DNA of 64,000 nt, taken from NCBI RefSeq assembly GCF_020745735.1, contig NW_026867788.1, forward strand, positions 413,584-477,583, written 5' to 3'. The DNA comes from Hemiscyllium ocellatum. Its lineage: Eukaryota. Positions within the stretch are counted from its first letter, which is position 1; every line of letters starts with the position of its first letter. The translations under genes and the position numbers were made by a program. Below are positions 1-53,538 of the stretch, piece after piece. The notes beneath the pieces are model-generated. The model saw nothing but the letters and a program-made list of their open reading frames with translations. It made no database searches and was not told the origin of the DNA.

Positions 1-1142
1 CAGCCAAATTCATCCTTTTCTTCACAGTGATTTGAATCAGTAGGGCAAGATGTTCTCGAAAATCTGTCTGAGTATTGAGTGACTGTAAATGGTTGAGACT
101 GCAAAACTTTACTGTGTTAGTGTTATCATTTTATCTCACCAGTATAATTCTTGGCTGAGGAATGTTTAATGGCTCAGCGTAATGCATATTTAGCCTATAT
201 TTAACCTTTTCTGCATATCTCATGGAATGTTTAATATTCTACAAGGCGATTTATTCTGTATCGATTCTGTGTTGTGCCTGCTCTGGGAGGATTTTTTTCA
301 GGGAATCCTGGATGCAGTTCTACTATAAACCAAAATGTATTTGATATGATGCATTGGACAGTGCAATATGGAGGGAGATTTACCCAGCACATACATCGAC
401 TGTACAATCATGGAAATCATTTGATGTAGCAGTGTAAAGGGGCTTGAACCCCTACTCTTGTCTTTCTGATTTTGTAATGTTGAGTAGCTTATAATGAACA
501 GGCACACTCATGCACACACACATATGCAAAATATCTTTGAACAACCGTTTCAGTGTTGAATGGATGAGTGCTGTGAGAGCTTTAATGGTTTGAATTTTGG
601 GTCTGACTGCAGGTGAAACTGGGTAAAAGCACAGTTTGTGCTTTTCGATTTGTTAATTAATATTGCTGACTTTAGTTGAATAAAGGAATGTTGTCTTAGG
701 CATCATCTGGCACCATTAATTAGACCATTATTTTCCACATCGCGAGCTGGAGTGTCAGGTGGAATTTATAGACATGTGACATCATTAAAACGAAGGCTTG
801 GAATGTTTCCGGAATGAATCATTTGAATTAGAGCCTCTGAATTAGACAAAGTAGGCAAGATGAATTTAGAGTTGTAGAAATCTTTCACGACAATGAGAGA
901 CCGCTTCGCCCATCGCACCTGTGCCACCTGAAAACAGACCTTTCCAGCTGACACCCACTTTAAAGTATGTTGTCCACAAACCTGTTGGTGATCGCACTTC
1001 AAGTAAATATTTGGGAACATTGCGTAGGGTCTAATCCACTTTCATCATAGATATGATTTCCAATGTTGTAAATCCTGGCTTATGGGGAAAAAGAAGGGGT
1101 AGATGTTTCTCAAGACGTTTTGAGTATTCTTGACTTAAAGGA

Positions 1143-1306
1143 GAAAAATGCAGACATTTTCCCCAGAAATGGTGATAGCAACGTACGTTTGTTTAGCCAA
1201 GATCAGCAACATGAATCAATGGAAATGACATGTGAAAAATGCAGACATGCTCTCCAGAAAAGCTGACAGCAACATACGTTTATCTTGCCAAGATCAGCAA
1301 CATGAA
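1143..1306. repeat. Two-copy direct repeat, 91-bp period
   Basis: GAAAAATGCAGACAT...GCCAAGATCAGCAACATGAA begins at 1143 and again at 1234. Confidence 0.8.
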
Positions 1307-2404
1307 GTAAATAAGTTTTAAAAACCACTTCCGATTAATTGATTATTAAAAATATGCAATTCACAAAGTGCAAAGTACAGGGGAGGTTGTGTGTGTCGGT
1401 GGGTTGTTGTGGGGATGGGCAATGTTCACTGTTCCCTGATGCCCACTTGCGTATGTGAGCAGCAGGTGAACCTGCAAATCAGGTTCAGGATGGTGCTGCA
1501 TGTATTTCAGCAAATACTGGCACATTGCATTCTCCAATAAATCAGCAATAACATGAATATTTATTTTTGAAGCCAAATAAAATTAAACAATATAGTGGGA
1601 CAACTTCCTTTCACTTCTTTGAACTCGTATCAAGGGACGCTGTCTGTGGACCTGGGGCGGCAGGAGGATCTTTAACAACGGAATGTGCGGGAACAGAATC
1701 AATGTTGGAAATCCAGATAGACTTGAACATTTTTCACTGGAGGTTGAGAGTTCGGGGTTGGGAGTGACTACATGTAAGTTTATAAAGCCATGAGTGGAAT
1801 GGCGAATAGCTCTTCTTGACATGATTCATACCGGAAATTTTCAAAGCTTTCGTTTCAAAGCATCACATATCAATAAACTGTACATGACACCAGCGATGTG
1901 GAAATTAATGGTGTATATGATGGTGCCAAACGATGCCTGGTACAACGTCCCTCCAATCAAATAAAGTCAGCAATAAATATTAACAATGTGAAAGACTCAA
2001 ACCATACTTCTACACAAATCAGTTTCATCTGCAGTCAGATCCACAACTTACAATTTAGACCATTGTACAGAAGATAGACGAGGCCTCACAATATTGGAAA
2101 TGATTTAGTTTGATAAATGAATCCATCGTACACTTCCTCAGAGCAACTCGTTTTAACAAATTTGCTTGATTTTTTTTGTGTGTGGGGTAATTCACGAAAT
2201 GTTACTTTAATCCGATGGATGTGAACAATTTGCACTTCAGAAGTTTAGGAAAACGTCCTTTACGACAGATACACAAGCAACTTTTAGAAACCATTGATTA
2301 AAGGTGAGATCTTTTTTGGGCACAAGGATGATCCAAATGATATTTTGTAAATGTTTGGAGCTGGGATTGTCTTCAAGTTTTGACTAAGATATTGGCATAT
2401 TACA

Positions 2405-2692
2405 TTACGTACAGTGTGGAAACAGGTCCTTCGGCCCAACAAGTCCACACCGACACACACCCACCCAGACCCATTCCCGTACACCTTACACGAAGGACAA
2501 GTTAGCGTGGCCAATTCACCTAACCTGCACATTTTTGGACTGTGGGAGGAAACTGGAGCACCCAGAGGAAACCCAAGCAGACACGGGGAGAATGTGCAAA
2601 CTCCACACAGTCAGTCACCTGAATCGGGAATTGAACCCGGGTCTCTGGCACTGTGAGTCAGCAGTGATAACCACCGAGCCACCATGCCGCCC
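2405..2692 (-). mobile_element. tRNA-derived shark SINE (HE1-type, CR1-like 3' tail)
   Basis: Minus strand begins GGGCGGCATGGTGGCTCGGTGGTTATCACTGCTG (A box) ... CCGGGTTCAATTCC (B box). It ends in a CR1-like GGCCGAAGGACCTGTTTCCACACTGTA tail. Confidence 0.85.
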
Positions 2693-2769
2693 ACTGTATT
2701 TTCACTCTGTTGGTGGATTTCAACAGTAGGTGACATATTTTTATTATGAGAGGAGAAACAATGTAAAAT

Positions 2770-2985
2770 ATATAACGGAGACAGCTTTTTCACAGAGAAT
2801 GGTTTGTGGCGGGCACTGTTAAAACTTTCAGACGACATTTGGATAAGTAAATGAATATCAAACATTTGGAAGGATATGGGCCAAGTACACACAGGTGGGA
2901 TCAGTTTAGTTTGGGATAATACTGGCATGGACTGGCTGGACCAAAGTTTCTGTTTCCATGCTTAATCACTCCATGACTCTGCGAC
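2770..2985 (+). mobile_element. CR1 LINE 3' end fragment
   Basis: ...GGAAGGATATGGGCCAAG...GGCATGGACTGGCTGGACCAAAG...TGTTTCCATGC...TCCATGACTCT, the typical shark CR1 3' UTR. Confidence 0.7.
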
Positions 2986-4913
2986 TATTTATCTTTTTTT
3001 CTCAATATTGAACAGTGTTGTCATGATCCTAGAATGAACTGTTGACGTTTATATTGTGTCTGAGACTTCGCGAATTCTTGTTTCAATGAGAGGAGGGACG
3101 AGTTCTCCAAGACACATAACTTAAAAATAAAATGTTCACCAGCTTTGTTGCTGTGCAGAATTGATTCTGTGGAGATAGTTTGCAATTGGCTTTCCACCAC
3201 CTCGGCAACAATGAGTCAAAATATCTTTGATCCACTGCAGAAACTCCAGTAAATGAAACTGGGAACTCAAGGACCTTTTCGGCAGTTAGGTTATTTGCTG
3301 CCAAGTATTGCATCAAAAGACGAAATGAAGCAACCAAAATAAGATCCTACCAAACTATATTTTCCCATTTTCTCACAATGGACACATTCCACTTTGCATT
3401 TCTTCTTTTGAAAGGAAAGTCACTGAATACAGCATTCACCGTATGATTATGAGAAAACAGGAAATTGAATGCAATTACGTTCTGGTTAGTTCAGCCCATT
3501 TATTCAGTATATTTAAAGCTTCTGAATATGAAATTAATTGACCAAAATCCCACGTTGCAGTAACATTTGTTATTTTTATTTCAAAATAAATTGACAAATA
3601 CGAATTGGTTCAAACTCACATCACTTAATGCACGATTCTCTGATTCATGCACCTCATTAAAACGAAATGGGCCCTTTTATACTTGGTTAATACAGGTGTA
3701 ATGTAACGCCGAATGTTTGCTGATTGTTACGAGTTAACTGTCCCTATCAGTGAGCAGAGAAATGTACTGTTTATGACCAACATTCGTGGTAATTATTATT
3801 GAAATACGCACTAATATAACAAAACACTCCTGATGTACCCAGACAGTTACCTGCAATGGTTTAGATTTTGAGGATTTTGCTTTAACTAATGGACTGGCTT
3901 GTTCTAGTTCATTAGATGTTCTTTTAAAAGGTTACCTGGGTGTTGTATATCAGTGCCAACTCACTTTTTGTTTCTCAGGCAAACAGCTTTCCTTTATGAT
4001 GCATCTTAGGGTCGAAGCAATTCAAAAAAGAAGATGCAAGGAGAGACATTCTGCTTCTAATCTCAGGAACCAAACTGTTTAGTGACATACAATCATATTC
4101 TGAATATAATCTCTTCAGACATGATCTATATTAGGTTGCCTAGATTGATTTCAGAAACGCAGATTGGAAATGATGTATTATTTCGTAACATCAGAGAGAC
4201 TTTGAGGGACAGTAAAAATAACGCCACTAAATTTGATGGCTAATAATATTAGTGAAGTTCTATTTAGTTTTATCTGCTTGTGGTTGAATGTAGAATTAAA
4301 TTGCAATTGAATATTCTAAATATAGTCACTTTGAACACGCTATATATTCAGTTGCCTAAATTGATTTTTGCAATGTCTAGTATGAATTACATGTTATTTT
4401 GAAGTGCGACAGAGAATTGCAGTGTCCAGAAAAAAAAATGCTCAATTGTTTTATTAGCTGTTAATATCTTTGAACTTTGATTTTAGTTTTATCTGATTGT
4501 GAAAGAATTTAGAAATACAGGGAGTTAAATTCCAATTTAATTCGTTTTGTATTTTTTAAAACAAAGTACTTGCAACTAGCATTTGAAACAGACCTGAAGC
4601 TACTCAAATTTACTTCCACCATTTAAAAAAAACACTTCCAAAGAAGCTATTCAGCAAAACAAATATCCTAAGATGTGTATATCTCCAAGTTCAAGCGTAA
4701 TCTCATGTAAATACATGAACCCATCTTTTCGGGCTGTGCAAGCTGATACCAGGATCCGGTCTCAGACTCCAACTGGAAACCAAGAGTCGGAAGCTGTCAG
4801 CCTGCCCCTTCTGATGGCCACATAAATCCTGGGCACTGGACCGTAATTCAACACGCCTGGATCGGCTTTGTTTAGAAAGATCTTGACAGAATATTTTCTC
4901 ACAATTTATCAGA

Positions 4914-4962
4914 ATGATTGTATCGACAATTTTTCTCAGTTTGTTACTGATTTTCTTATCAT
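4914..4962 (+). pseudogene. IGHV: IgM VH leader exon (MIVSTIFLSLLLIFLS-C)
   Basis: ATG at 4914, hydrophobic signal peptide, phase-1 donor T|GTGAGT at 4963. Splices in frame to the acceptor AG at 5088-5089 to give ...[13 protein letters not shown]. Confidence 0.93.
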
Positions 4963-5089
4963 GTGAGTGTTTTTTGTTCAAGTCTTTCTTTGATACTGTC
5001 TCAATGTTAGTCTACCTCAGGAATGTCAAAGACTCAGCCATCATTTCATCAGCGTTAATGTTGCAATTTAATTTGTTTTCTTTTCAAAG

Positions 5090-5391
5090 GTGTCCAGTCA
5101 GAGGTTGTTTTGACTCAGCCAGAGGCAGAGACTGGCCCTCCTGCTGGTAGCCTGAGACTGACCTGTAAAACCAGCGGGTTCAATCTTGGCAGCAGCTACA
5201 TGCACTGGGTCCGACAAGTTCCCGGCAAGGGCCTGGAATGGCTGCTGTACTACTATACTTCAGTCGACAAAAACTATGCACCAGCGATATTGGGCCGATT
5301 TACTGCGTCCAAAGAGACTTCAGACAACATTTTTGTGTTGAACATGGGAAACCTGAAGATCTAAGACACGGCCATCTATTACTGCGCAAGA
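5090..5391 (+). pseudogene. IGHV: IgM VH exon with premature stop (TAA 5362-5364 where E of KIEDTAIYYCAR is expected)
   Basis: Translates [100 protein letters not shown]. Canonical V-domain Cys, Trp and YYC are present, typical of shark VH. Confidence 0.96.
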
Positions 5392-5411
5392 GCAGTGGGT
5401 AGGTGGATATT
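5392..5411 (+). other. IGHD: D-derived sequence fused directly to VH (germline-joined V-D1-D2 junction)
   Basis: GCAGTGGGTAGGTGGATATT directly follows CAR with no V heptamer or nonamer. It is followed immediately by a 12-spacer RSS. Confidence 0.75.
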
Positions 5412-5439
5412 CACTGCAATTATGATCGATACAAAAACC
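5412..5439 (+). other. 12-bp-spacer recombination signal sequence (3' RSS of D2)
   Basis: CACTGCA (5412-5418), a 12-nt spacer, then a perfect nonamer ACAAAAACC (5431-5439). Confidence 0.9.
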
Positions 5440-5747
5440 TTTCAGACCCTATTGTTTGCAACACGTCAGTGATTATTTCTACAAACCGTCTTAACTTGCA
5501 GTGCAGTATTAGTTCTCTGGGCTTCTGTGCATGTTTAATTTGTAAAAGTGGTGATAATTATTGATACACCAATTGGTTATTTTGAGAATCAGCTCAAGTG
5601 TTACTCTGTGAAATATAAAACAACATAAAAATTTATTAAGAATGATCAGAATTCACTAGCGCATGTGATGTAGCTTCATTGTGACTTAATATTGCCAGTG
5701 GTTCCGAAAATGTAATGGGAGATTTTTGGATTGTTTTATGCAGAGCT

Positions 5748-5786
5748 AGTTATTATGTGGCCCAGTGCAGACAATGTAACACTGTG
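5748..5786 (-). other. 23-bp-spacer RSS of JH
   Basis: Perfect heptamer CACTGTG (5780-5786) abuts JH. 23 nt upstream lies AGTTATTAT (5748-5756), a 6/9 match to GGTTTTTGT. Confidence 0.75.
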
Positions 5787-5834
5787 CCTATCTTGATGAC
5801 TGGGGCCAAGGGACCATGGTGACAGTGACTTCAG
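5787..5834 (+). pseudogene. IGHJ: JH segment (YLDDWGQGTMVTVTS)
   Basis: WGQG motif and VTVTS, with a phase-1 donor G|GTGAGA at 5835. Confidence 0.95.
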
Positions 5835-6341
5835 GTGAGAATTTTAACCTTAACTGTGATTTTTTAAAAACTTTCCATTCATGTGATTAATTTCTGTATT
5901 AAATGAAACTCATATTCTGTCTTGAGTTTGGTTTGGTTCGGAATAATTTTTGTTCAGGCTGATTATAGACTTCAGTTAAGGCTCAGCAAGTGGTTATAAT
6001 GGTTGTGACGGAGTCAGTTACTCTGAGTGTCTCTTTGTTTCGATCCGATGGGCTTTCAGTGTGGCTGGGTTACTTAATGTCTCTTAATCAGTCAGGTATA
6101 AATAATGTTTAACGACAGTGACACTGGGACTATCGGTTTTCTTATCGACAACAAATGCTAAGAAGTTGAAGATGTTCAAAATATTACCAAACATGATTAA
6201 AAATGCTAAAATATCATTATCCATTTCTTGAATATATTTCCTGTACACATTATGTTCTTACCATGATTATATTTTCACCTTTATTTTGCTAATTTTGTTG
6301 ATGACAAGCAGGTTAGAAACTGTCATAATTTTTTGCAGGGC

Positions 6342-6660
6342 TATGTTTCATTCTGTTGATTGAGATTCTAAGATCGTTTGACTTGATTCTGTTGAATTGA
6401 GTTGTTCGGATTTTAAATTTGTTTCAGTTGATTCGGTTGAAATGAGTTGATTGGATTCTGACTGTGCTCTTACTTAGTTTTGCTGAAGTGTGTTGATTGA
6501 ATTTTGAAATTGTTTTATTTGGTTCTGTTGAATTGAATTGGTGAGATTCTGATTATGTTTCATTTAAGTCTGTTGTTTTCAATTGATTGGATTCTGGTTT
6601 TATTTTCCTCGAATCTGTTGAATTGAGTTGATTGGATTCTTATTCAGTTTGTGCAATTGA
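6342..6660. repeat. Degenerate 45-bp minisatellite (~6-7 copies) in the J-C intron
   Basis: Core TTCTGTTGAATTGAGTTGATTGGATTCT recurs at about 6387, 6432, 6477, 6523, 6568 and 6613, with a shortened copy at 6351. Confidence 0.8.
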
Positions 6661-8214
6661 TCTGTGTTTTCATGCTTTCTGTAATTGGTGTTTTCTTTCT
6701 GGCGATAAGATGGTCTCTCTGGATTACTTTTAATTGAAAATCTTTGTGAAGTTCTTTGGTTTTCCTGAATCGTTTCGGCATTTGTTAAATTTGTATGCCA
6801 TTTTTAACTCAGCTTGATTGAAAAATTTGCATCTGTTTGTAACTGTCTGAAAACCAACTTAAGGCAGAAATAAAGAAGCGCGAGGAATGAAAAACTTGAC
6901 TTTTTAATACAGTGGTGATTTTTTTTAAAAATCGCATTTCTAATTGTAAATTAACCGAATTTTGTTTTCAGTCGGTTCATTCAAAATAAAATTTGGGACT
7001 AAATTCTGCAACTGCAGAATTGCTCAGTTCACAAAATTGAAACTAACTTACTACAATATTATATTTTTTATATTGTCTTAATATTTTTCCATTAGAGAAA
7101 TTTTGTTTTGTCCTTAAAGAGATTAATCATTATATGCCTAAAAATGCTGCACTAGATTGTCATGATCATCAAGGGTGTACAGTTGGGAAATAAATCTAAC
7201 CTTTGCCGGAAAAGTTACAGCTTTAAATGTTACGTCCCCTCACAAACAAAACTGATGTTATGACTTGTTACTATTTGTTCAATTTAATCATTAATTTACT
7301 TGATTCTGAGCAGTTCTGTTAGACTTCAGTTCGGGTTTTCTTGTGAGGTTACATCATGTTCTTGGTTCTGTTGAAACTGTTTGCAGTGCTAGCTCTGCTG
7401 CAAACACATCGTGTTGTCATTTGTTGATCTTTGCTATGTTGAGTATTCTACATTGTTATTGCACTGTTCACATGATTTCTGTCAGTGAACCGCTCCAGTT
7501 TCCTCTTTCTCATTCAATGCAATCAGCATGCCAAATGAAACTTCACAAAGCTTGACGTTACGTGAAAGGTAAGTCGCAGGGTTTTGGAAATGAAGGGAAA
7601 ACAGATACCTTCAGGCGCGATTCTTAACGAGAAGTAATAATTAAAGATTAACCTAATCCACTCTTTACAATCCACGTTCAGAACTCAACTACATAGTTAA
7701 ACCACAATGTCTATCTTTAAACAGTTTAACAAGTCATAGAGAAATATAAATTGAATTTCAAAAGTATAATATTCCAGAAGTTGTTACCTTTGCAAACAAA
7801 ATCCTTAACTGTGGTTATAATTGATCAAGAAATGCCTTTCCATTCTGCTGTATATTACACACAAGTTTTCTGGCTGGAAAATATGATTGGCAAAGACAAT
7901 TTGGAAATTCTGCTCAATTCGATGAACAACAGATCAATTTCACTGCTTTGATCGGTTTCACAAGTAATCTGAGTCCTGAGTCAATTAATTGTTCTAGCCC
8001 TGATTAAACTGGGTTTGCTGTGAAAAATGAAACCTGAGTAATTTAATCTGCACAGTGCTTTAGGTATCCCCAATCCCTACTTTTTAAATAAATAGTTACA
8101 TTTTACAGCACAATATCAACTGAAGAGTCATTCTTTTGGAAACAACTACTATAGTGAATTGGTGACCAAGGCCAAATTTCGAATTAATTGAAATAATCCA
8201 CTTATGAACTCGGA

Positions 8215-8550
8215 GGGCAGCATCATGGCTCAGTGGTTAGCATTGATGCTTCACATCGCCGGGATCCCAGGTTCGATTTTACCCTCGGGTAACTATCTGT
8301 ACGGACTTTGCACATTCGCCCCGTGTCTGCGTCGGCTTTCTCCAGGTGTTCCGGTTTCCTTCCACAGCCTGAAAATGGGCAGGTTAGGTGAATTGGCAGT
8401 GTTGCTTTGCACATAGTGTTCAGGGATGTGCATATTTAGGGTGCATTCGGTGGGGTAAATATGGGTTGGGTAAATGGGTTTTCGTGGGCTCCATATTGCT
8501 CGGGCGATCGGTGTGGAATTGTTAGGCCAAATGGCCTGTTTCCAATATGT
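8215..8550 (+). mobile_element. tRNA-derived SINE
   Basis: GGGCAGCATCATGGCTCAGTGGTTAGCA...CAGGTTCGATT head; GGCCAAATGGCCTGTTTCC tail. Confidence 0.85.
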
Positions 8551-8854
8551 TGGAAATGTACTCTAAAACAATGGAAGTACTTGCTGCAAAAGCAGAGAAT
8601 TTATTTCCCATCGATGTATTTAGACATATGCGGAGTTCATAAATTTGCAGAAGACATGAACTAGAGGATAACAGAGTACATTGTTTGAACTAGAGGATAA
8701 CAGGGCACATTGTTTATTCAAACGCTGAAAATAGAGTAATTTTTTTTAATCAATATACTTGACCGATTATTGCAATGTAGCAATCTGAAGGAGACTGCTC
8801 ACGTTAGTTAAGTATGATGATTATTTAGATTTGATTTCCTATAGTATATATTGG

Positions 8855-9137
8855 GCCATTTGACCCTACAAGGCCACACCGATCCTGTGAAGAGCAACCC
8901 ACCCAGACCCATTCCCCTACCCTATATTTACCCTTGAGTAATGCACCTAACACCATGGACAATATAGCACGACCAGTTCACCTGACGGGCACATCCTTGA
9001 ATTGTGGGAGGATTCCCACGCAGCCAAAGTAGAAACTGTGTAAACTCCACAGAGACAGTCACCCGAGGCTGAAACCGAACCCCGGTACCTGGATCTGTGA
9101 GGCAGCAGTGCGCAACACAAATCCACCGCTCTGCCCA
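8855..9137 (-). mobile_element. tRNA-derived SINE
   Basis: Reverse-complement homolog of the SINEs at 2405 and 8215. Confidence 0.8.
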
Positions 9138-12100
9138 CATTTACTTAGCCACTCAGTTAAAGCGGGCAACTCCAGAGAGAAGCATGTTTTCAATTCACAC
9201 TTTTTTAAAAAAAAACATTTTCGTACATGAAAAGCTGCTAACAAGAAAATGAATTTGCCCTAATTTCTTCAACAGACATGCATTTCCACACTGTAATGCA
9301 GGACTAACGTCATGCAGTTCATGTAAAATCTCCACAGTTCAAGAAATGCTTTCAGATATGTAAAAACTATTTGGAGTATTATCCATTTCCTCCGGAGCTT
9401 TGCATTAATTGTTGACATATCTCACCATTGCTAATTACAACGACTTATTAAGTTTATTGACTCAGTGATTATCTATGTTCATTGTGAACACGTTCTCGTT
9501 TGCATTAATCCTTTGGTTAGTTCCTCTGATGAATGTTCAATTGCAGTGAATACATTGGATGTGAGGAATTGAGCAGATATATCTGCTAACATACAGATTG
9601 TTGTACATTTCGTTTCAGTGTTATCTCCGACTAACTTGTCAACGGGTCCTGACCATTTGTAAATTGTCTGGTTTGGGTACCTGAATTTTCGATAGTTCAA
9701 TTTTATCTTGCTCTTCAAATCGACTTTTATCTGCCAGAACTGCAATATTTGATTGGGTGCCTCAGAACTGAGTGCCGTGGCTAAGTTATTCCAATCAGAA
9801 CGAATACCACAGTAACAAAAGGCAGGCAGATTCCAAATGTTTTGATATTGGTTCTTGGCAATAAGGGATACTTGATTGAGCGATGAAGAGGGAAACATGC
9901 TGATTATTTCCTTTTGTGCCTCAGTTGGTCATGGACATGTAGCACAATGTAGAATCAAAAATTATTTTGCATCTTACTATTTGAAAACCTATTAGCGTTT
10001 AATATCACTGGCAACGGTCATAATGCATTTCAAAACATTTTCATCTATATCAAACTAAGTAGACCACGTGGGGCAGCAACATTCATAGGGGTTCTAGGGA
10101 AGGGAGTTCTAGGTTAAAATCCAGTGTCAGTGAATTGATGGTAATGTAATCCCACTTTTTATTCCTCAGAGAATTTGGACAATTCGGAGCTGCTGTCAAA
10201 GTATTCTTTGATAATTGTTGCAATGTTACTTTCGTGTACAAACTTTCTGGAACAATCCCTTGTTGTTGGAAAGTATCAATACTTAACATCGTGTATGTAC
10301 TGTCAAACAGGTGGGCTGTCTTCTCTGAGATAGTGTGAAGCTCATTGTGTTCAGGTCTGCTGTGATATTATTGTAGTGTGCCTGACTCCATGGCAAGCGG
10401 CCTGTGTTCACTTACAGCCTGGTTGAGAAGTATAAAATACCAACTCTTATCCGGTTAATTCTGGGCAAAAAAGCAGATTGAGTTGTTAGTGTGTTTGTTG
10501 GAGTTCCACTCACAGAGGCAGGTGAAATCTATTTCATCTCTGTCCTGACTTGTATCTCTTAGATATTAAACAAAACTTTGGCGTTTAGCAGCTTTTTCGA
10601 GATCAATATTTGTTCACAAGATTTTGAGCACATCTAGCTGGGGTTAATCGAGTAAGTCCTTTAATAATTCCCAGCTTTATAACTGCTGTTCAAATAATAT
10701 CACGTATAACTAATCCAGAATGTATTGTTTTGAAGCATAATTGATGAGATTATGCCTAGGTTGTTTTACTTTATATTAAACTGGTGCTGTGGCTGAATAT
10801 GATTGTTCAGTACAATGGGGGTTCCGCTGATTCCAACACTTGCATCATATGGTGATAGCTTTTCAAGTGGTCTTCAATTGTTATCTCGGCTCATCCACTA
10901 CCTCTGCTAAGAATGCTTTTCTCACTGCAGTCAAGCAAACGTAACCGCTGTCTAACTCAACAGGTGTGAGTTCTTGTGCCAATAGCATGAAAACAATTTC
11001 CTGAAGCGGGAGGGGATGGGGTAGGGGGGTGAGGGGTGTCTCTCGACGTGAAACGTTAACCTCGCTTTCTCTCCACAGGAGCTGCCAGACCTGCTGAGTT
11101 TCTTCAGAAATTTCTGTCTTTATTTTAGTTTTCTAGTATTCCAAGTTTTTTGATTCATTTCTAAAAATGTTCTGTTCGATTAAACAAGTTCTTCAGAGAG
11201 AAAATGCACTTAAACAAATTGAGAATGTTCAGAGATATTTATTATCAGAGAATCATGTTTTACAAGAAAGCATCATGAAGTAACAGCACACTCCAGAGTG
11301 CAGTGCCTGCTGTATTTGGGTGAGAGTTATTTTGATCAGTCAAGTAGTGAATGTCAGTGCTCCCATTCCAAATACCTGTAATCAACAGAATTACTTTTTA
11401 AAGAATGTGTGAAACAATTAATTTGCTAAAATATTTTAATACAAATTGTTCACCGCCAGTGCTAACCTAACGACTGACACATGATAGGGATGGGGAGGAG
11501 GACAGCACTAAGCCCTCGAGCTGATCCACCACTTACTTATATCATGGTGCATCTGCGCACTAACTGCAGACGCCTCTCTTTGGCTAAAACTCTTTACTAC
11601 CGTTGTTTTGCAAGCAAAGTCTATCCCAAATTTAATGGTTCGACTGCCCATAACAAAGGAAGACACCGTTTTTGAAAGGTATTTCTGTGAGTATTTAAAG
11701 GGACACAATGAGGCTGTAACATCCCAGTCTCGTATTCCACTAATGGTACTTCTTTATTCCAGGAAAGCATAATGTGTGATTGCCGTGCTAAAAATGAGGG
11801 AATCCTCATTTCCATTATATGATTACGAAATAGCTCTGTTAGTTGAGTGAAAACGCAGTCAAACCACACAGAATTAAACCATTCAACATGTCATCTTGTG
11901 TGGGCACGCAAGTGCCTCAAATACTTTTCAATTCTTCCGGCGGACAGGTGTGGAAGTATCAAACTTTTATATCGCATTGAAAAACCAGTTGTCCTCAGCA
12001 TACTTGAATTGCTGAAGCTCGTGTGGTATTAGCATTCACAGCACTGTTAGAAAGTGAGTCCCATGGCTGTGATTGAGGAAAAGTAAAACGGCAGGGAAAT

Positions 12101-12359
12101 AGTTGCAAGTCAAGGTGGAGTCTAATTTGGAGGTAATCATTCAGATGAAGCATTTTCATGCATGCACGCCCTTATCCTCAAAGATCACAATTTTGAAACA
12201 TGTTGCCAGGGACATGTTAGAATACAAATTAGAAGCTGAATTAGGCACCTCGGTCACTTTAGAATGCTATTGTATTCATGGGATCATCATAAATCCTGCT
12301 GCTCACCAGTCTTTCCAACAGCCGATAAAATTGAGCCCGATTCTTTACTGTTCAATGAA

Positions 12360-12780
12360 CGAATGGTGAACCATTGGAATTCTCCGCCACTAAATTGCTT
12401 GAGGTTAAAACATTAAGTGATTTCAAGAAGGAGATAGATTCCTTCAATTCTGAAGATATACTACGAGTATGTGGAAAAAAAGACAAACAGGGTACAATAT
12501 CGGTTGAAAGTCATGAGAACGACGAATGGGGCATGGTTTGTAAATTTGCACATGAAACCAAAATTGGTGCTATAATTGGCAATGAACGTTATCTAAAAGA
12601 GATCGTGATCAATTGGGCAATTGGGCAAATGGGCTGAAGAGTTGCAATTGGAGTATAGATTAAATGAAAACGACCTTTAAAGAAGATAAAGCAGGTCACA
12701 ACTTGCAGAGATAATTGTAGGGCACTGGATCGTGTTGTCCAACAGAGAGACCTGGGAGTTCAGAAGCATCGATTCTTACA
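12360..12780 (+). mobile_element. Degenerate CR1 fragments
   Basis: Remnants of the CR1 RT region (CKFAHETKIG..., WQ/LE-FN-like) and the C-terminal WNSLP-like region. Confidence 0.55.
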
Positions 12781-12784
12781 GCGT

Positions 12785-14650
12785 CATATAGTCATAGAGA
12801 TGTAGAGCAAGGAAATAGACTCTTTGTTCCAACTCGTCCATGCCGACCAGACATCCCACCCCAATCTAGTCCCACCTGCCAGCACATGGCCCATATCCCT
12901 CCAAACACTTCCTATTCATATAGCCATCCAAATGCCTCTTAAATGTTGCAATTGTACCAGTCTCCACCACTTGCTCTGGCATCTCATTCCATACACGTAC
13001 TACCTTCTGTGTGAAAAAGTTGTCCCTTATGTCTTTTTGTGTCTTTCCCCCTCACCCTAAACCTATTCCCTCTAGTTCTGGACTCCCCGAACCCAGGAGA
13101 AAATAAACTTTGCCTATTTACTCTAACCATGTCCCTCAGGATTTTCTAAACCTGTATAAGTTCAAGCACTAAGTCTCTGAAGTTCCAGGGAAAACAGCCC
13201 CAGCCTGTCCAGCTTCACCCTCTAGCTCACATCCACCAATCCTGGCAACATGCTTGTTAAATCTTTTCTGAACCCTTTCAAGTTCCACATCATCTTTTCG
13301 ATAATAAGGAGACCAGAATTGCACACAATGTTCCGACAGTGGCCAAAACAATGTCCTATACAGCCACAACATGTCCTCCCAACTCCTGCATTCAATACTC
13401 TGACCAATAAAGGAAAGCATAACAAACGCCTTCTTCACGATTCAATCTACCTGCGACTAGACTTTCAAGGAGGTATTAATGTGCACTCCAAGTTCTCTAT
13501 GTTCAGCTACACTCCCTCGGACCTGACCATTAAGTGTAGAATTTCTGCTAAGATTTGCTTTCATAAAATGCAGCACCTCGCATTTATCTGAATTAAACTC
13601 CATCTGCCACTTCTCAACTCATTGGCCTATCTGGTCAACGACCTGTTGTTTAATGAGATAACCCTCTCCGTTGTCCTCTACACCTCCAATTTGGTGTCAT
13701 CAACAAACTTACTAACTGTACCCCTTATGCTGGCATCCAAACCAATTATGTAAATGACAAGAAGTAGAGGCCCCAGTACCGATCCTTGTGGCACTCAACT
13801 GGGAACTGGCCTCAAGTCTGAAAAACAACTCTCCACCAAGACCCTCTATCTTCTACCTTTGAGCAAGTTCTGTATCCAAATGCTGAGTTCTCCCTGTATT
13901 CCGTGAGAGCTAACCTTGTTAATCAGTATCACATGGGGAACCTTGTCAAACGCCTGCCTGAAGTCCATATAGATCACATCTACCACTCTGCCCTCATAAA
14001 TCCTTTTTGGTAATTCCTCAAAAAACTCAGTCAAGTTTGTGAGGCAGGCTTTCCCATACACAACATCATGTTGACTATCCCTAATCAGTCCTTGCTTTTC
14101 CAAATCCAGGTACAGCCTGTCCCTCAGGATTCCCTCCAGCAACTTACCCACAACCTACGTCAGACTCACTGGTCTATAGTTCTATGGCATTTCCTCCATA
14201 AACAGTGGCAACACGATAGCCAACCTCCAGTCATCCGGCTCTTCACCTGTAACTATCATCGATACAAATATCTCATCAAGGGTCCCACAATCACTTCTCT
14301 AGATTCCCACAGAGTTTTAAGCTACACCTGATCAGGTCATGTGGATTTATCCATCTTTACCCGTTTCAAGATATCTAGCAATGTCTTTAATAACATGGAC
14401 ATTTTACAAGATGTCACTATGCATTTCCCTATGTCTTTATCTTCAATATCCTTTTTTACAGTAAATATTGACGCAAAATACTCTCGCCATTTTCTGCGGC
14501 TCAACACAAAAGCCACCATGTTGATCATTGAGGGGCCCTATTCTCTCCCTCGTTACTTTTTTGTCCGTAATGTAATTTTAAAAACTCTTCTGATTCTCCT
14601 TAATTCTATTTGCCAAAGCTGTCTCATGTCCCCTTTTTGCACTCCTGATA
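12785..14650 (-). mobile_element. 5'-truncated CR1 LINE (RT remnant, multiple frameshifts)
   Basis: Minus-strand ORFs: ...SQHDVVYGKACLTNLTEFFEE...VDVIYMDFRQAFDKVPH (CR1 RT) and ...VQFWSPYYRKD...ERVQKRF. CR1 3' UTR with TCTATGACTATATGAC tail near 12785. Confidence 0.92.
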
Positions 14651-14699
14651 TCCCTCTTAAGTATACTCCTACTTCCTTTATACTCTCACTGGGTAGTAA

Positions 14700-15085
14700 T
14701 GTTGAATACAGGGACCAGGGGGTTCAGATACATAAATTCTTGAAAACATTGCCTCAAGTAGACAGTGTGTTGAAGGTTTGGCACATGCTCCTTCATTGGT
14801 CAGAGCATTGAGTGCAGGAGTTGAATCTTCTTTCTGTAACTGTACCAGACATTGGAATGAAATGCCGGAGGAAGTGGTAAATGCAGAGACAGGTACAACA
14901 CTTACAAGACATTTGCACAGGTATAGGAATTGGATAGGTTCTGATGGATGTGTGCTAATAGCAGACAAATGGAATTAGTTTAATTTGAAAACTCTGGTCA
15001 GCATGGACAAACTGTACTCTGACCAATAAAGGAAAGCATAACAAAGGAAATGTTCTGTGCTATGTGGCTTTATGACTCTATGGCT
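14700..15085 (+). mobile_element. CR1 LINE 3' fragment
   Basis: WNEMPEEVVNA motif; 3' UTR ending TGGCTTTATGACTCTATG. Confidence 0.8.
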
Positions 15086-15193
15086 TCATTGTGCAGTTTG
15101 CTCAACGTTGGTAAGCAAGTGAGGGGATAGATTGGGAGTATGAGATTGTTTGAGTTAGTAGGCTTTGGCTGGCCATTTACCAGTACGGAAAAT

Positions 15194-15372
15194 TTAGCAT
15201 TGCCAATTCACCTATCTGCATATTATTGGATTGGGGGAGGAAACCGGAAGAAACCCACGCAAACACGGGCAGAATGTGCAAACACCACACAGAGTCGCCT
15301 GAGGTGGGAATTGAACCCGGGTCTCTGACGCTGCGAGGCAGCAGTGCTAACCACTATGCCACCGTGCTGCCC
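15194..15372 (-). mobile_element. tRNA-derived SINE (5' part)
   Basis: Minus strand begins GGGCAGCACGGTGGCATAGTGGTTAGCACTGCTGCCTCGCAGCG...CCGGGTTCAATTCC. Confidence 0.85.
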
Positions 15373-15799
15373 ACAGTTTCGTCAAATTGTGCTTGGTAAA
15401 TGAGGGACCGTTTGAGTTGAAATACAGGAGGTCTATCTTTGCCAAGCTTGTTAGCGGAGAGATCAGCAGAGTGCCACGCTGCTGATTGGAGAGATGTGCA
15501 GGATGCCAGGCTCTTTCGAGAGCAGAAGGTCACTGTAATGCAGTGGCAGGTGGACTTGATGTCAAAATGCAAAGCTCAGAGTCTGGAGAAATGGAATGAG
15601 GTAAAGGACAAATGCGAAAGGAGCTAGGATGCAGTGTGCACACGTTGACTTGGATAAGATGAGAGATCAGTGACCAAGGGCTGAGGTCATGCCTGGGTAG
15701 TGGGGTTCTGACAGAGGTTGTAAAAATGAGGGTGCCATGTCCAGTCAGGGCCAAATTCAACATGGACAGACGCAGGGTGGCAGCAGTGGAATTACAGGG

Positions 15800-16720
15800 T
15801 CATATAGATGTACAGCATGGAAACAGACCCTTCGCGCCACCAAACCATGCCGACCAGATATCCCAACCCAATCTAGTCCCACCTGCCAGCACCCGACCCA
15901 TATTCCTCCAAACCCTTCCTATTCATACACCCATTAAAATTTCTCTTAAATGTTGAAATTGTAACTGCCTCCACAAATTCCTCTGGCAGCTAATTCCATT
16001 CATGGATCACTCTTTCCATGAAAAAATCCCCCCTTAGGTCTCTTTTACATCTTAGCCCTCTCACGTTAAACCTATGCACTCTTGTTCTGGATTCCCTGAA
16101 ACAAAGGAAAAGACTTTGTCTATTTATCCTATCCATGCCCCTCATAATTATATAAACCTCTGGGATTGACATTATGTATCAATCTAGAATGTAGAACATG
16201 GAACATTAGACTGCAGTACAGTCCCTTCAAGCGTCTATTTCATGCCAACCTGTGAAACCAATCTGAAACCTTTTATCCTCCACTATTTCATTTTCACCCA
16301 TATGTTCATCCAATGACATTTCACATGTCCTCAAATTTCACACATATACTATTGTTGAGACAGTGCCGTCCACACCCTTACTACTCTCTGATTAAAGAAA
16401 CTACTTCTGACACCTGTCCTCTACCTATCAGCCTTCAATTTAGGGCTATGTCCCCTCCTGCTAGCCATCATCATCCAAGGAAAAATACTCTCTCTGCTTA
16501 CCCTATCTAACCCTCTGATTATCGTATATCTCTCAATTAAGTTACCTCTCAAACTTCTCCACTCAAACAAAAACAGCCTCAAGAACCTCATGCTTTCCTC
16601 ATAAAACCTTCCCGCCACAGGAGGCAACATCATGCTTTTGAAACACAGTCCCTCTACTAATGAAAGCCAACTCAATGTATGCCTTCTTAGCAATCCTATC
16701 AACCTGACTGGCTCTATACA
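15800..16720 (-). mobile_element. Two adjacent CR1 3' fragments (15800-16160 and 16185-16720)
   Basis: Motifs SRTRVHRFNVRG...DLRGDFFMERVIHEWN and LRGNLIERYTIIRGLDRV; two separate 3' tails. Confidence 0.8.
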
Positions 16721-17339
16721 CATGGACACCGAGGTCTCTCTGCTCATCGACATGACCGATATGGATTGTCTTGGATGTGTTTCTTGTGATAGGGGTGGTG
16801 TATTCCGGGGATGAATGGGTGAGTAACCGGAAGGATTTGGCAATGTGAGTGGAAATTTAGGTCTAGACAGCGAGGGAGAGCAGGGCTCAGTCTGAGACAT
16901 GATGGTTTTGGTGGTGAACTGCGTGTCAGTTTGAAATGTATTAAAGTTAAAGAGTACTTGTTAATTTTTCAAATCATATTTACGTAAATAGTCAACTCAG
17001 TTAGTTGTAACCCTTCAAAGCCTTTGAACCCTAATGCTCTTCCATTTTTCAGAGTCCTCCAGAATTCAGATAATTTTAAATTAGAAGTTTCAACTTTCAG
17101 ACAATTGACATGAGTCCAGCTATGATAGACTTCCTCCAAGTCCCAGTGCTCAGCTCCTGCCCATGCTGCTGCTGCAGTGACCATCTTTCCTGAGAGAACA
17201 TTCTGCCTTGATAAATGAGAAAGAGTCACTGGACCTGAACTGTTCACTCTGATTTCTTTCTAGAAATACTGCCAGCTGTTGGGTTTTTCCAGCAATATCT
17301 GATTTCGTTTCTGATTTCATGCAGCACGGTACCTAGTCG

Positions 17340-17690
17340 GGTGGCACACTGTTTCCGTGGTTAGCATTGCTACAACAAAGCACTTGGGACTCGGGTTCTA
17401 TTCCATCCTCGGGTGACTGTCTGTGTGGAGTTTTCACATTCTCTCTGTGGCTGTGTGGGTTTGTTCGAAAGGTCTATAGATGTGCAAGCTGGGTAAATTA
17501 GCCATGCTGTGTTCAGGGAGAAAGTGAGGTCCGCAGTTTCAGCATTCTGTGTTCAGGGATTGGCATGTTAGGTCCATTAGTCAGAGTTAAATGTAGAGTA
17601 TTAGGGTAGAGCAATGAGCCTGGATGGTTACTTTTCAGAGTGTTGGTGTGGATATGTTGGGCCAAATGGCCTGTTTGCACACACTGTAGA
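17340..17690 (+). mobile_element. tRNA-derived SINE (degenerate)
   Basis: GGGTGGCACACTG...GTGGTTAGCATTG...TCGGGTTCTATTCC head; GGCCAAATGGCCTGTTTGCAC tail. Confidence 0.75.
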
Positions 17691-18041
17691 ATTTTGATGA
17701 ATGCGCATTTCCTTGGTTTGTATTTTGTAAAACCTCTCTGCTCTTCACTTGCAACCCAGTGAAAGTGTCAGTTGGTAAGATTTTAAAACAGTTACTGGGG
17801 TGGGATCAGCATGTTCTTCTTCCTAAATTATATGGTAATGGTAAAGATAGAGGGCATGTTTATGAAGAGGAAACATATAGATCATGATCAACATCTGTTA
17901 AGAAGTAAAAATAAACTCCAGTTATACTGTGGACTTCAGCAGGAGGATGCTGGAAAACGTTTACAAATGAAGATGCATTTGAGTAACTGATATGGACAAA
18001 TTAACAGAAACTAATGTGCTCAATTGATCTTTCTATCGTAG

Positions 18042-18347
18042 AGACACCGTCTCCCCCCACGCTTTATGGCCTGGTCTCCTCCTGTGAGGACCACAACACC
18101 GGTTCTCCGATCTTTGGTTGTTTGGCAATGGACTATTACCCTGATGTAACCAAGGTAACCTGGAAGAAAGGTGGGGAGTTAATCACGACTGGATTGAAGA
18201 CTTACCGATCAGTAAGAAACAAGAGTGGAACCTATACCCAGAGCAGCCAGTTAACCCTGCCCGGGTCAGCAGTAGATTGCCCCACCAAAATCTACTGTGA
18301 GGTTCAACACAACGGGTCACACAAGAGCAAAGAAATGCCATGTCCAG
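18042..18347 (+). pseudogene. IGHM: Cmu1 exon (open reading frame)
   Basis: Acceptor TAG at 18039-18041. Reads [16 protein letters not shown]...GCLAMDYYP...VTWKK...IYCEVQH...EMPCP with both domain Cys and the Trp kept. Donor G|GTAAGT at 18348. Confidence 0.95.
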
Positions 18348-18429
18348 GTAAGTGTTGTGGGAACTGAGATCAACAGAACATCTGTGATTAACATGAATGA
18401 GGCATTATTGATAACCATTCTCACAGAAG

Positions 18430-21358: not shown

Positions 21359-23284
21359 ATAATATATAAGATCTGTTTGCGGAGCTGGAAGTTTTTGTTG
21401 CGAACGTTTCGTCCCCTGGCTAGGAGACATCATCAGTGCTCTGGAGCCTCCTGTGAAGCGCTTCTTTGATGTTTCTTCCGGTATTTATAGTGGTCTGTCC
21501 TTGCCGCTTCCGGGTGTCAGTTTCAGCTGTCCGCTGTAGTGGTTGGTATATTGGGTCCAGGTCGATGTGTTTGTTGATGGAGTTTATGGATGAATGCCAT
21601 GCCTCTAGGAATTCCCTGGCTGTTCTCTGTCTGGCTTGCCCTATGATAGTAGTGTTTTCCCAGTAGAATTCATGTTGCTTGTTGTCTGAGTGTGTGGCTA
21701 CTAGGGATAGCTGGTCGTGTCGTTTTGTGGCTAGCTGATGTTCATGGATGCGGGTTGTTAGCTGTCTTCATGTTTGTCCTATATAGTGTTTTGTGCAGTC
21801 CTTGCATGGTATTTTGTAAACTACATTAGTTTTGCTCATGTTGGGTATCGGGTCCTTTGTTCTAGTAAGTTGTTGTCTGAGCGTGGCTGTTGGTTTGTGT
21901 GCCGTTATGAGTCCTAAGGGTCGCAGTAGTCTGGCTGTCAGATATGAAACGCTTCTGATGTATGGTAGTGTGGCTAGTCCTTTTTATTGTGGCATGTCCT
22001 CGTTCCGTGGTCTATCTCTTAGGCATCTGTTGATAAAGTTGCGCCTCACTACACACTTCACAGTCAACAATCAGATATACGAACAAATCAACGGAACACC
22101 CATGGGATCACCAATCTCGGGACTCATAGCAAAGGCAGTTATTCAAAGGTTAGAACAAACAACCCTACCACAAATTCAACCCAAACTCTGGGTCAGATAT
22201 GTCGATGACACTTTTGTAATCATCAAAAACACAGAAATAGAAAAAATACACCGGATCATCAACGCCACACTCACAGGAATCCGATTCACGAGAGAAGAAG
22301 AAAAGGATAGCCAACTCCCATTCGTGGACGTGTTAATACAGAGAACACTGAACGGAGAATTCACCACAAGGGTACACAGGAAAACACCACACACAGACCA
22401 AGTCCTAAACTATGAAAGTAACCACCCCATCACACACAAACGAAGCTGCATCAGGACACTATTCAAAAGAGCCACAACACACTGCAGTACACCAGATCTG
22501 CGAAAAGAGGAAGAGGAACACCTATAAAAGGTATTCGCCAAAAACGGATACCCGCGCAAATTTATCAAGATGCCTAAGAGATAGACCACGAAACGAGGAC
22601 ATGTCACAACCAAAAGGACTAGCCACACGAGCATACATCAGGAGTGTTTCATATCTGACAGCCAGACTACTGCGACCCTTAGGACTCATAACGGCACACA
22701 AATCAACAGCCATGCTCAGACAGCAACTTACTAGAACAAAGGACCCGATACCCAACATGAGCAAAACTAATGTAGTTTACAAAATACCATGCAAGGACTG
22801 CACAAATCACTATATAGGACAAACAGGAAGATAGCTAACAATCCGCATACATGAACATCAGCTAGCCAAAAAACGACACGACCAGCAGTCCCTAGTAGCC
22901 ACACACTCAGACAACAAGCGACAAGAATTCGACTGGGAAAATACTACTATCATAGGGCAAGCCAGACAGAGAACAGCCAGGGAATTCCTAGAGGCATGGC
23001 ATTCATCCACAAACTCCATCAACAAACACATCGACCTGGATCCAATATACCAACCACTACAGCGGACAGCTGAAACTGACACCCGGAAGCGGCAAGGACA
23101 GACCACTATAAATACCGGAAGAAACATCAAAGAAGCGCTTCACAGGAGGCTCCAGAGCACTGATGATGTCTCCTAGCCAGGGGACGAAACGTTTGCAACA
23201 AAAACTTCCAGCTCCGCGAACAGAACCACAACAACGAGCACCCGAGCTACAAATCTTCGCACAAACTTTCAATAATATATAAGA
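21359..23284 (+). mobile_element. Penelope-like retroelement insertion (RT C-terminus plus GIY-YIG) with inverted terminal duplication and 13-bp TSD
   Basis: RT motifs QINGTPMGSPIS and LWVRYVDDTF; endonuclease motif NVVYKIPCKDCTNHYIGQTGR. 21372-22044 is the reverse complement of 22554-23224. TSD ATAATATATAAGA at 21359-21371 and 23272-23284. Confidence 0.93.
23157..23196 (+). ncRNA. Minimal type I hammerhead ribozyme motif in PLE terminus
   Basis: GCA, core CTGATGA, T, stem II GTCTCC(TAGCCA)GGGGAC, GAAA, CG, TT, TGC. Stem I is 3 bp (GCA/TGC). A mirror copy lies on the minus strand at about 21400-21440. Confidence 0.65.
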
Positions 23285-23342: not shown

Positions 23343-23653
23343 GTCCAGATGTTTTCCCTCCAACTCTTCTCCTGACTGTGAGTCCCAATGAAGAAATCAC
23401 AAGCAACAAGTATGCCACTCACGTCTGTTAATATTCGATTTCTATCCAAAGTCAACCTCAGTGATTTGGTTGAAAGATGGCCTACCTTTGGATTCTGGCT
23501 TCTTCACGTCTCCTGTGTGTGAGGCGAGCGGGAACTTTTCGGTGACGAGTCGCCTGATGATCCGTTATAGTGAATGGTTCGACAGCGCAGTCTATACCTT
23601 CCAGGTCACTCATGGAGAGAACACTCAAAGTAAAAATATCACCGCATTCCAGG
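23343..23653 (+). pseudogene. IGHM: Cmu2 exon, frameshifted
   Basis: Acceptor AG at 23341-23342. [29 protein letters not shown] then TAA at 23429-23431. The domain continues in a shifted frame as [17 protein letters not shown]...YTFQVTH, implying a 1-nt deletion near 23429. The second Cys is now Phe (TTC 23599-23601). Donor G|GTAAG at 23654. Confidence 0.93.
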
Positions 23654-25570: not shown

Positions 25571-25879
25571 GAGATACTGTGCGCCACGATTACACAGTTA
25601 AAATCCTCCCGCCACCAGTAGAACAGATCTTGCTGGAGGCGACGGTGACTTTAAGCTGCCTTGTGTCCAATCTTCCTTCTGGAGTCAACGTCACCAGGAT
25701 ACAAGAAAAGAAGCCTCTGAAATTAGAAATTGCTGACCAGTCTGGACAGAATCCTGGCAGTGCGATTAGCAAATTAGAAATTTCGACTGAAGCCTGGCTG
25801 AGTGGCATTACTTTTGAATATGTGGTGTACCATCAGAATCTACCAACTCCGTTGAGAGACTCCATCCACAAGAAGAAAG
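25571..25879 (+). pseudogene. IGHM: Cmu3 exon
   Basis: Acceptor TAG at 25568-25570. Reads ...[26 protein letters not shown]...STEAWLSG...[13 protein letters not shown]. Core Trp is now Arg (25696-25698) and the second Cys is Tyr (25819-25821). Donor G|GTGAGC at 25880. Confidence 0.93.
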
Positions 25880-26336: not shown

Positions 26337-26728
26337 TGATTAATGCACTGGAGCCATCAGTGTCTGTGCTCCTGCCACCAACAGAAGAAACCTCCGTTCA
26401 GAGGTTTCTCTCCCTCACCTGTTTAGTGAGGAGTTTCTTCCCCCGAGAGATCTTCGTCAAGTTGACAAACAATGACAAGTCGGTGAATCCCAGTAACTAC
26501 AAGAACACCGAGGAGATGGTGGAGAGCAACAACACCTCCTTCTTCATCTACAGCCTGTTATCCATTACTGCGGAGGAGTGGGCCAGCGGTACTTCTTACT
26601 CCTGTGTGGTGGGACATGAAGCGATTCCATTGAAGATCATCAACAGAACAGTCGATAAGTCGAGTGGTAAAACAAGTTTTGTAAACATTTCACTTGCACT
26701 GATGGACACTGTTAATTCATGTCAATAA
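26337..26728 (+). pseudogene. IGHM: Cmu4 exon plus secretory tailpiece
   Basis: Acceptor CAG at 26334-26336. Reads ...[10 protein letters not shown]...[17 protein letters not shown]...[43 protein letters not shown]. The tail has the NIS glycosylation site and penultimate Cys. Core Trp is now Leu (26462-26464). Internal donor G|GTAAAA at 26667 serves the membrane form. Confidence 0.95.
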
Positions 26729-53467: not shown

Positions 53468-53538
53468 AGTTTCTGCCCAGTTTCGAACTGGGGACCTTTC
53501 GCGTGTAAGACGAATGTGATGACCACTATACCACAAAC
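53468..53538 (-). tRNA. tRNA-Val(TAC), degenerate (unit 5)
   Basis: Reverse complement GTTTGTGGTATAGTGGTCATCACATTCGTCTTACACGCGAAAGGTCCCCAGTTCGAAACTGGGCAGAAACT. Two nt are lost from the acceptor stem; the T arm is perfect. Confidence 0.8.

Follow-up and report, generated by a model that had tools for sequence, protein, structure and literature searches.

We have found, at the start of a 64,000-nucleotide stretch of the Hemiscyllium ocellatum genome (contig NW_026867788.1, positions 413,584 to 477,583 of the forward strand; hereafter the window, whose own coordinates are used throughout), an IgM heavy-chain cluster in which the V segment is continuous with D-derived bases and the J segment lies apart. 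It is very probably an inherited VDD-J cluster, formed when RAG-type V(D)J recombination fused V, D1 and D2 in an ancestral germ-line cell, from which the product passed to the descendants. The joint is common to several samples and to a collinear locus of Chiloscyllium punctatum, and therefore goes back to one old germline event.

Layout of the cluster and composition of the junction

The cluster occupies the + strand in the order L-V...J-Cmu1-4 and ends in a secretory tail. Its leader exon (4914-4962, with the ATG at 4914 and the donor GT at 4963) is identical at 46 of 47 positions to its C. punctatum counterpart, and the V-derived part of the VH exon covers 5090-5392. As an earlier note on this DNA had described, VH ends in YYCAR (TAT TAC TGC GCA AGA, 5377-5391) and runs, with no V RSS between, into 20 nt (GCAGTGGGTAGGTGGATATT, 5392-5411) followed at once by a 12-spacer RSS (5412-5439), which consists of the heptamer CACTGCA, a 12-nt spacer and the nonamer ACAAAAACC, 9/9 against the consensus. 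Beyond it, intervening DNA (5440-5747) leads to the 23-spacer RSS of JH (5748-5786; nonamer AGTTATTAT, 6/9, a 23-nt spacer and heptamer CACTGTG, 7/7) and to JH itself (YLDDWGQGTMVTVTS, 5787-5834, donor GT at 5835), which is unjoined. The single interval of about 340 bp noted before JH measures 347 bp from the end of the 12-RSS to the first J base, and a scan from V to J revealed no further credible RSS beyond the one at 5412-5439 and the J-side one at 5748-5786.

Four constant exons follow. Cmu1 (18042-18347) is open, keeps both Cys and shares 87% amino acid identity with the Cmu1 of the C. punctatum counterpart; Cmu2 (23343-23653) is frameshifted and, with 311 nt, not a multiple of three in length; Cmu3 (25571-25879) was aligned to human IgM Cmu3/Cmu4 chains; and Cmu4 with the secretory tail (26337-26728) closes on a stop at 26726-26728 that overlaps AATAAA. 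The J-Cmu1 intron measures 12.2 kb in the window versus 9.2 kb in C. punctatum. Within this intron, an open frame on the - strand (13849-14154) carries reverse-transcriptase-like motifs (...VVDVIYMDFRQAFDKVPH...) and likely represents a retroelement insertion. Just upstream of the Cmu2 acceptor at 23343, two near-identical open frames lie in inverted orientation (21423-21767, - strand; 22835-23173, + strand), an arrangement consistent with an inverted-arm insertion. An Rfam search of the window returned tRNAs only: the four matches above the Rfam gathering score, all on the - strand (47679-47760, 49318-49390, 50514-50586 and 53468-53538), lie downstream of the cluster in a repeated block, where ORF repeat units are found at about 43-54 kb.

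When the V exon was used in a protein search, the best matches were C. punctatum proteins, and four of their genomic loci (L001 to L004) were compared with the window; the D1 and D2 references used below come from these C. punctatum paralogs and not from H. ocellatum clusters. Two of the loci are unrearranged. The first, L003 (BEZZ01002017.1), has a V with a 23-spacer RSS, D1 (ATGCGACAGCGGGT) with a 3' RSS of 22-nt spacer, D2 (ATATAACTGGGGTGA) flanked on both sides by a 12-spacer RSS, the D2-J interval and J, and the 3' RSS of its D2 is CACTGCA-ATTATGATCAAT-ACAAAAACC. This V-D1-D2-J cluster (L003:4178-4500) is structurally complete but crippled, having a frameshift in FR3 and a V heptamer changed from CACAGTG to CGCAGCG. 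The second, L002 (BEZZ01001580.1), has the D1 ATACTACAGTGGGT; otherwise unrearranged, it has lost about 185 bp at L002:11289-11330, a deletion that took the 3' portion of D2 with its 3' RSS as well as the beginning of the D2-J interval, and a good D2 5' RSS is left there facing a 'CAC-less' pseudo-heptamer, CTCTGTG.

These references allow both D contributions to the junction to be assigned. BLAST homology to L002 and L003 stops exactly at 5392, and the germline V end in the unrearranged paralogs is ...GCAAGAGA; therefore the G at 5392 is a V base and a single nucleotide was trimmed from V. The next eight nucleotides (CAGTGGGT, 5393-5400) match exactly the last 8 nt of the L002 D1, with the D1 3' end intact and 6 nt trimmed from the D1 5' end. 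An 8-mer of the two D1 references turns up in 0.14% of junction shuffles and in 0.23% of window 20-mers, that is, with a chance of 0.0014-0.0023. The last eleven nucleotides (AGGTGGATATT, 5401-5411) align to the 3' part of the L003 D2, with the same heptamer directly after, and, because they sit directly on the uncut D2 RSS, their 3' part must be D2. Against the one D2 reference available they agree at 5 of 11 positions, and the C. punctatum copy (AGCTGGATTGT) at 7 of 11; the sequence match is weak, and a D2 origin of 5401-5411 is indicated mainly by the position at the uncut D2 RSS. At its 5' end D2 was trimmed by about 4-5 nt, and its 3' end was never cut from the RSS. The first 1-3 nt of 5401-5411 could be P or N nucleotides instead of D2, and the A at 5401 may have come from D1 as a P nucleotide or belong to D2. 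The junction holds D1 and then D2 sequence in this order, D1 by its 8/8 match and D2 by its position. Of the 20 nt that the earlier note set apart, the first, the G at 5392, belongs to V and not to D; the note had expected the joint to preserve a history of trimming and of N and P nucleotides. The trimming is evident; N additions are not demonstrable in the comparison with the C. punctatum D1 and D2 references, and at most one P nucleotide (A 5401) is possible.

The same bases bear on whether V might have been joined directly to D2, with D1 skipped, giving a VD2-J cluster whose extra bases are N additions or belong to a longer D2. The 12/23 rule would allow it, given that the V 23-RSS can pair with the 5' 12-RSS of D2; GGGT-like cores are present in both D1 and D2, and the match between the D2-derived part and the one D2 reference is poor. 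We nevertheless consider a direct V-D2 joint improbable, as CAGTGGGT fits the D1 3' end at 8 of 8 positions versus 5 of 8 in its best placement on D2 (chance 0.001-0.002), and as 20 nt is long for a V end plus one 15-nt D2 trimmed at its 5' end.

Breakpoints and proposed origin of the join

The breakpoints were located by BLAST against the unrearranged L003, which gave two collinear blocks. In the first, window 4775-5392 matches L003 through its last V base (4478); in the second, window 5412-7443 matches L003 5219-7256, position 5219 being where the D2 3' heptamer starts, and the D2-J interval of the window is homologous to that of L003 from the heptamer on. Between the blocks, as BLAST and the multiple alignment both show, about 740 bp of the unrearranged cluster are replaced by 19 nt in the window. 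The missing DNA comprises the V RSS, the V-D1 interval, D1 with both its RSSs, the D1-D2 interval, the D2 5' RSS and D2, and the D2-J interval, the J 23-RSS and J are intact.

Two other readings of the RSS at 5412 were rejected. It might have been a D1 3' RSS with a shortened spacer; the canonical D2 of L003, however, has CACTGCA-12-ACAAAAACC and the same downstream interval. Nor is CACTGCA a degenerate heptamer: together with a near-identical spacer it is also present in L003, which is unrearranged, and in L001 and L004; three clusters besides this one thus have it as their normal D2 3' heptamer. The homology of L002 to the window resumes only at 5591, which had suggested a relic D2 further downstream; it resumes so late because L002 carries the deletion of about 185 bp.

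That deletion, which took the 3' part of D2 and its RSS, shows that ordinary losses of DNA do occur in these clusters, and one could suppose that the intervening DNA of the window cluster was removed by non-RAG deletions, or that this cluster descends, never having been split, from a primordial joined V gene. We regard either as very improbable. Two stretches are gone exactly at the RSS borders, with the D1 core between them and the D2 3' RSS intact, which is the product expected from RAG; and the window cluster nests among unrearranged paralogs at 80-86% identity, so that it is derived and not primordial.

The precise loss of four RSSs, the trimmed ends, the kept D1 core and the intact D2 3' RSS argue for RAG-type joining and against ordinary deletion. 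We propose that the joined cluster would have arisen through two RAG-type joining rounds, one between V and D1 and one between D1 and D2, whichever came first, with RAG presumably active in germ cells, a mechanism proposed by Lee et al. 2000 for shark joined genes; germ-cell RAG activity is the accepted explanation for germline-joined genes (PMC2193156, PMC4279169). Four RSSs and two intervals are gone, and between V, now one base shorter, and the uncut 12-RSS there remain 8 nt from D1 and about 11 nt from D2. Trimming is evident at three places: V (1 nt), the 5' end of D1 (6 nt) and the 5' end of D2 (about 4-5 nt). The joined cluster would probably have been usable for a time, needing a single VDD-to-J join (D2 12-RSS to J 23-RSS) and yielding a semi-fixed CDR3. 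Later decay in H. ocellatum would then account for the TAA in FR3, the Cmu2 frameshift and the single-base losses of Cys and Trp codons in Cmu2, Cmu3 and Cmu4.

Germline state and the counterpart in Chiloscyllium punctatum

Malecek et al. 2008 (PMC2435157) report somatic VDD-J intermediates in abundance from the lymphocytes and thymocytes of the nurse shark, and because such intermediates are common in shark lymphoid tissue the germline or somatic state of the joint in the assembly had to be examined. Contigs of four runs (X1, X3, X4 and X5, from 4 samples and 2 studies) were aligned to 4700-6100. In each of the four, a single contig with 0 differences and 0 gaps spans about 5160-5506, running from FR2 through the TAA and the V end, across the junction and the RSS, and on for another 67 bp. 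The depth of the junction contig was similar to that of flanking unique contigs (33.7 versus 47, 59.8 versus 71.6, 215 versus 204 and 40.8 versus 38 in the four runs), and over 4700-6100 none of these runs showed a loose end at the V end, an alternative joint or an unrearranged form. X5 differs from the window at 5637, and at least two genotypes are therefore represented. In three more samples, 0.87-0.92 of the sampled words of 5090-5500 are present. From the depth and from the cross-species copy described next, the sample tissues being coded, we infer that the join is inherited and present in non-lymphoid DNA.

By BLAST, window 1-18425 (about 18 kb) has a collinear match in the C. punctatum locus L001 (BEZZ01001741.1), with an identity of 85-92%. 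The best protein match, chiPu_0018910, comes from this locus and reads ...YYCTR-AVGSWI-VTAIMIDTKTF, which corresponds to the window junction read on through the RSS. At the DNA level its junction is GCAGTGGGGAGCTGGATTGT followed by CACTGCA-ATTATGATCGAT-ACAAAAACA, equal in length to that of the window and identical to it at 16 of 20 positions. We infer that L001 is an ortholog in a different species. None of the sequencing runs of the window's organism bears the year of the C. punctatum genome project; a large DNA run of 2018 belongs to another coded organism and contains about 8% of the words, in keeping with this degree of divergence. Around the junction the non-coding identity between the two is 89-91%, and since the joint is common to both, the join must be older than about 9-10% neutral divergence; this age argument is unchanged were L001 a paralog or a diverged duplicate. 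An excess of divergence within the junction itself (4/20, against a background of 9%) was considered and is not significant (p = 0.11).

Capture by the assembly of a somatic VDD-J intermediate from a lymphocyte or thymocyte, or a misassembly, is for these reasons a negligible prospect, however abundant such configurations are in nurse shark thymus: the identical junction stands at flank-level depth in four samples of two studies with no competing unrearranged form, and a somatic event cannot be common to two species' assemblies, of which the second has a junction of equal length, 16/20 identical, in a collinear locus. Inherited joining of V, D1 and D2 thus remains the preferred reading, and the main proposals of the earlier note, namely V-D1 and D1-D2 joins in a germ cell that were then inherited, are borne out by the 8/8 match to D1, the homology of the D2 3' RSS, the germline state in four samples and the L001 joint. 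It had suggested assigning the D bases by alignment to unrearranged clusters and looking for an orthologous joined cluster in a related species; the former identified CAGTGGGT as the last 8 nt of the L002 D1, and the RSS and following interval as the D2 3' RSS and D2-J interval of L003, and the latter led to L001, with the same junction length and the same RSS.

Further joined clusters were observed in C. punctatum. At L004:4441-4500 (BEZZ01000461.1) there is a germline-joined VDD-J with an unrelated junction, TGTGGA + GTATACTACAGTAATTGGGCTGTAG + CACTGCA-12-ACAAAAACC, after which come the D2-J interval and J; the cluster keeps the D1 5' end (ATACTACAGT), and so represents an independent joining event. 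A third joined cluster lies inverted in L001 itself (BEZZ01001741.1, minus strand), some 7 kb upstream of the counterpart, with its V ending near 2285. It reads ...TATTACTGTGCA + GTTGGTA + CACGGCA-12-ACAGAAACT, with heptamer and nonamer both mutated, and aligns to window 3755-6193 at 82%, straight across the junction. The junctions of L004 and of the inverted L001 cluster are different, and joins have therefore occurred repeatedly in this lineage.

Decay into a pseudogene and relation to known joined genes

The earlier note had seen in the junction a pre-made CDR3, open in the V frame. As far as the junction goes this stands, since it translates as AVGRWI without a stop; the gene around it, by contrast, is not open. 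An in-frame TAA at 5362-5364 interrupts FR3 (LKI*DTAIYYCAR); it precedes the conserved Cys by five codons and stands where L001 and L002, an intact paralog, carry GAA (Glu). It is found in all four runs, with no other letter seen. Further lesions lie in the constant exons; these were read from the assembly, as the read contigs covered 4700-6100 only. Cmu2 is frameshifted just past its first Cys codon (about 23423-23436), which brings a TAA into the spliced frame, and its second Cys is replaced by Phe (TTC, 23599-23601). Cmu3 has Arg for the conserved Trp (AGG, 25696-25698) and Tyr for the second Cys (TAT, 25819-25821), and Cmu4 has Leu for the conserved Trp (TTG, 26462-26464). Every one of these Cys and Trp substitutions in Cmu2-4 is one base from the canonical codon. 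With the TAA in FR3 and damaged C exons, the cluster is therefore a pseudogene in the H. ocellatum genome, and the open reading frame through V and C domains that characterizes a functional germline-joined Ig gene of the IgM1gj kind is absent from it. As to transcription, none of the RNA runs listed contains the stretch, and the two probable RNA runs (sample S5) contained 0 of the sampled words, a weak negative. An untrimmed VDD-to-J join would be out of frame, because V has 2 nt beyond its last full codon and J has 2 nt ahead of its first; the frame of such a join is irrelevant in a gene already dead.

L001 was compared as far as Cmu1, and its leader, V and J as well as Cmu1 itself are open. 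Between the V exons of the window and L001 there are 12 synonymous and 12 non-synonymous differences, giving a dN/dS of 0.27 (Fisher p = 0.004, in a small sample). When these were split by lineage with the paralogs as outgroup, 4 synonymous and 7 non-synonymous changes fell to the window and 4 and 6 to L001; split in this way the dN/dS signal is not significant, and the numbers are too few to tell which lineage relaxed. The V-exon ratio of about 0.27 suggests that the joined gene may have been under constraint for part of its history. A bolder reading, which we put forward tentatively and hold to be rather unlikely, is that selection maintained the product of the one VDD join as a functional, semi-invariant heavy-chain gene through a speciation, over tens of millions of years, and that the gene died only recently in the H. 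ocellatum lineage. It is based on the presence of the same 20-nt junction in two hemiscylliid-grade sharks, on the dN/dS of about 0.27 and on the apparently intact V, J and Cmu1 of C. punctatum. If this were so, partly joined clusters would have to be seen as receptors that are maintained, rather than as transient accidents.

How does this cluster compare with what is known of joined shark genes? Partly germline-joined IgM clusters were reportedly described by Kokubu et al. in 1988, and the class has been in the literature since then. Germline joining of IgM clusters, whether partial (VD-J, VD-DJ) or complete (VDJ), is textbook knowledge for cartilaginous fish (PMC5192425, PMC4279169). In the partly joined clusters of horn shark, skates and other elasmobranchs, V is likewise fused to D bases in inherited DNA, with precise excision of the RSSs, and J stands separate behind one RSS pair; there is no difference in kind from the window cluster, which shows in addition both D contributions, the joint in a second species and the inactivation. 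The nurse shark IgM1gj (Rumfelt et al. 2001), as it appears in the summaries given by PMC5192425 and PMC4279169, is a fully joined VDJ without Cmu2 that is expressed in neonates. Like IgM1gj, the window cluster is an inherited V(D)J product in an IgM-type cluster, with a restricted CDR3; unlike it, the window cluster still needs a J join, has four Cmu exons and is a pseudogene, with no RNA match among the runs listed.

The germline-joined light-chain genes NS4 (kappa) of the nurse shark, in which VJ was formed by a single join reported to be recent (Lee et al. 2000, PMC2193156), offer a parallel in mechanism, as there too RAG-like joining in germ cells was inferred from trimmed coding ends and complete removal of the RSSs in comparison with split paralogs. 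In contrast to NS4, the window has two successive heavy-chain joins, and these are older than about 9-10% sequence divergence. The somatic VDD-J of the nurse shark (Malecek et al. 2008, PMC2435157) has the identical configuration, with the D2 3' RSS facing the J RSS; those are products of individual cells, whereas the VDD-J of the window is part of inherited DNA and is fixed among the samples studied here. Evidence that RAG has been active in the vertebrate germline, and can convert a rearranging gene back into a fixed one, comes mainly from germline-joined antibody genes, and the window locus provides a cleanly dissected example, in which D1 and D2 can be assigned, the breakpoints fall exactly on coding borders, a minimum age can be given and the later decay is visible. 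It is a well-documented addition to a known class, and leaves the overall picture of germline joining in these fish unchanged.
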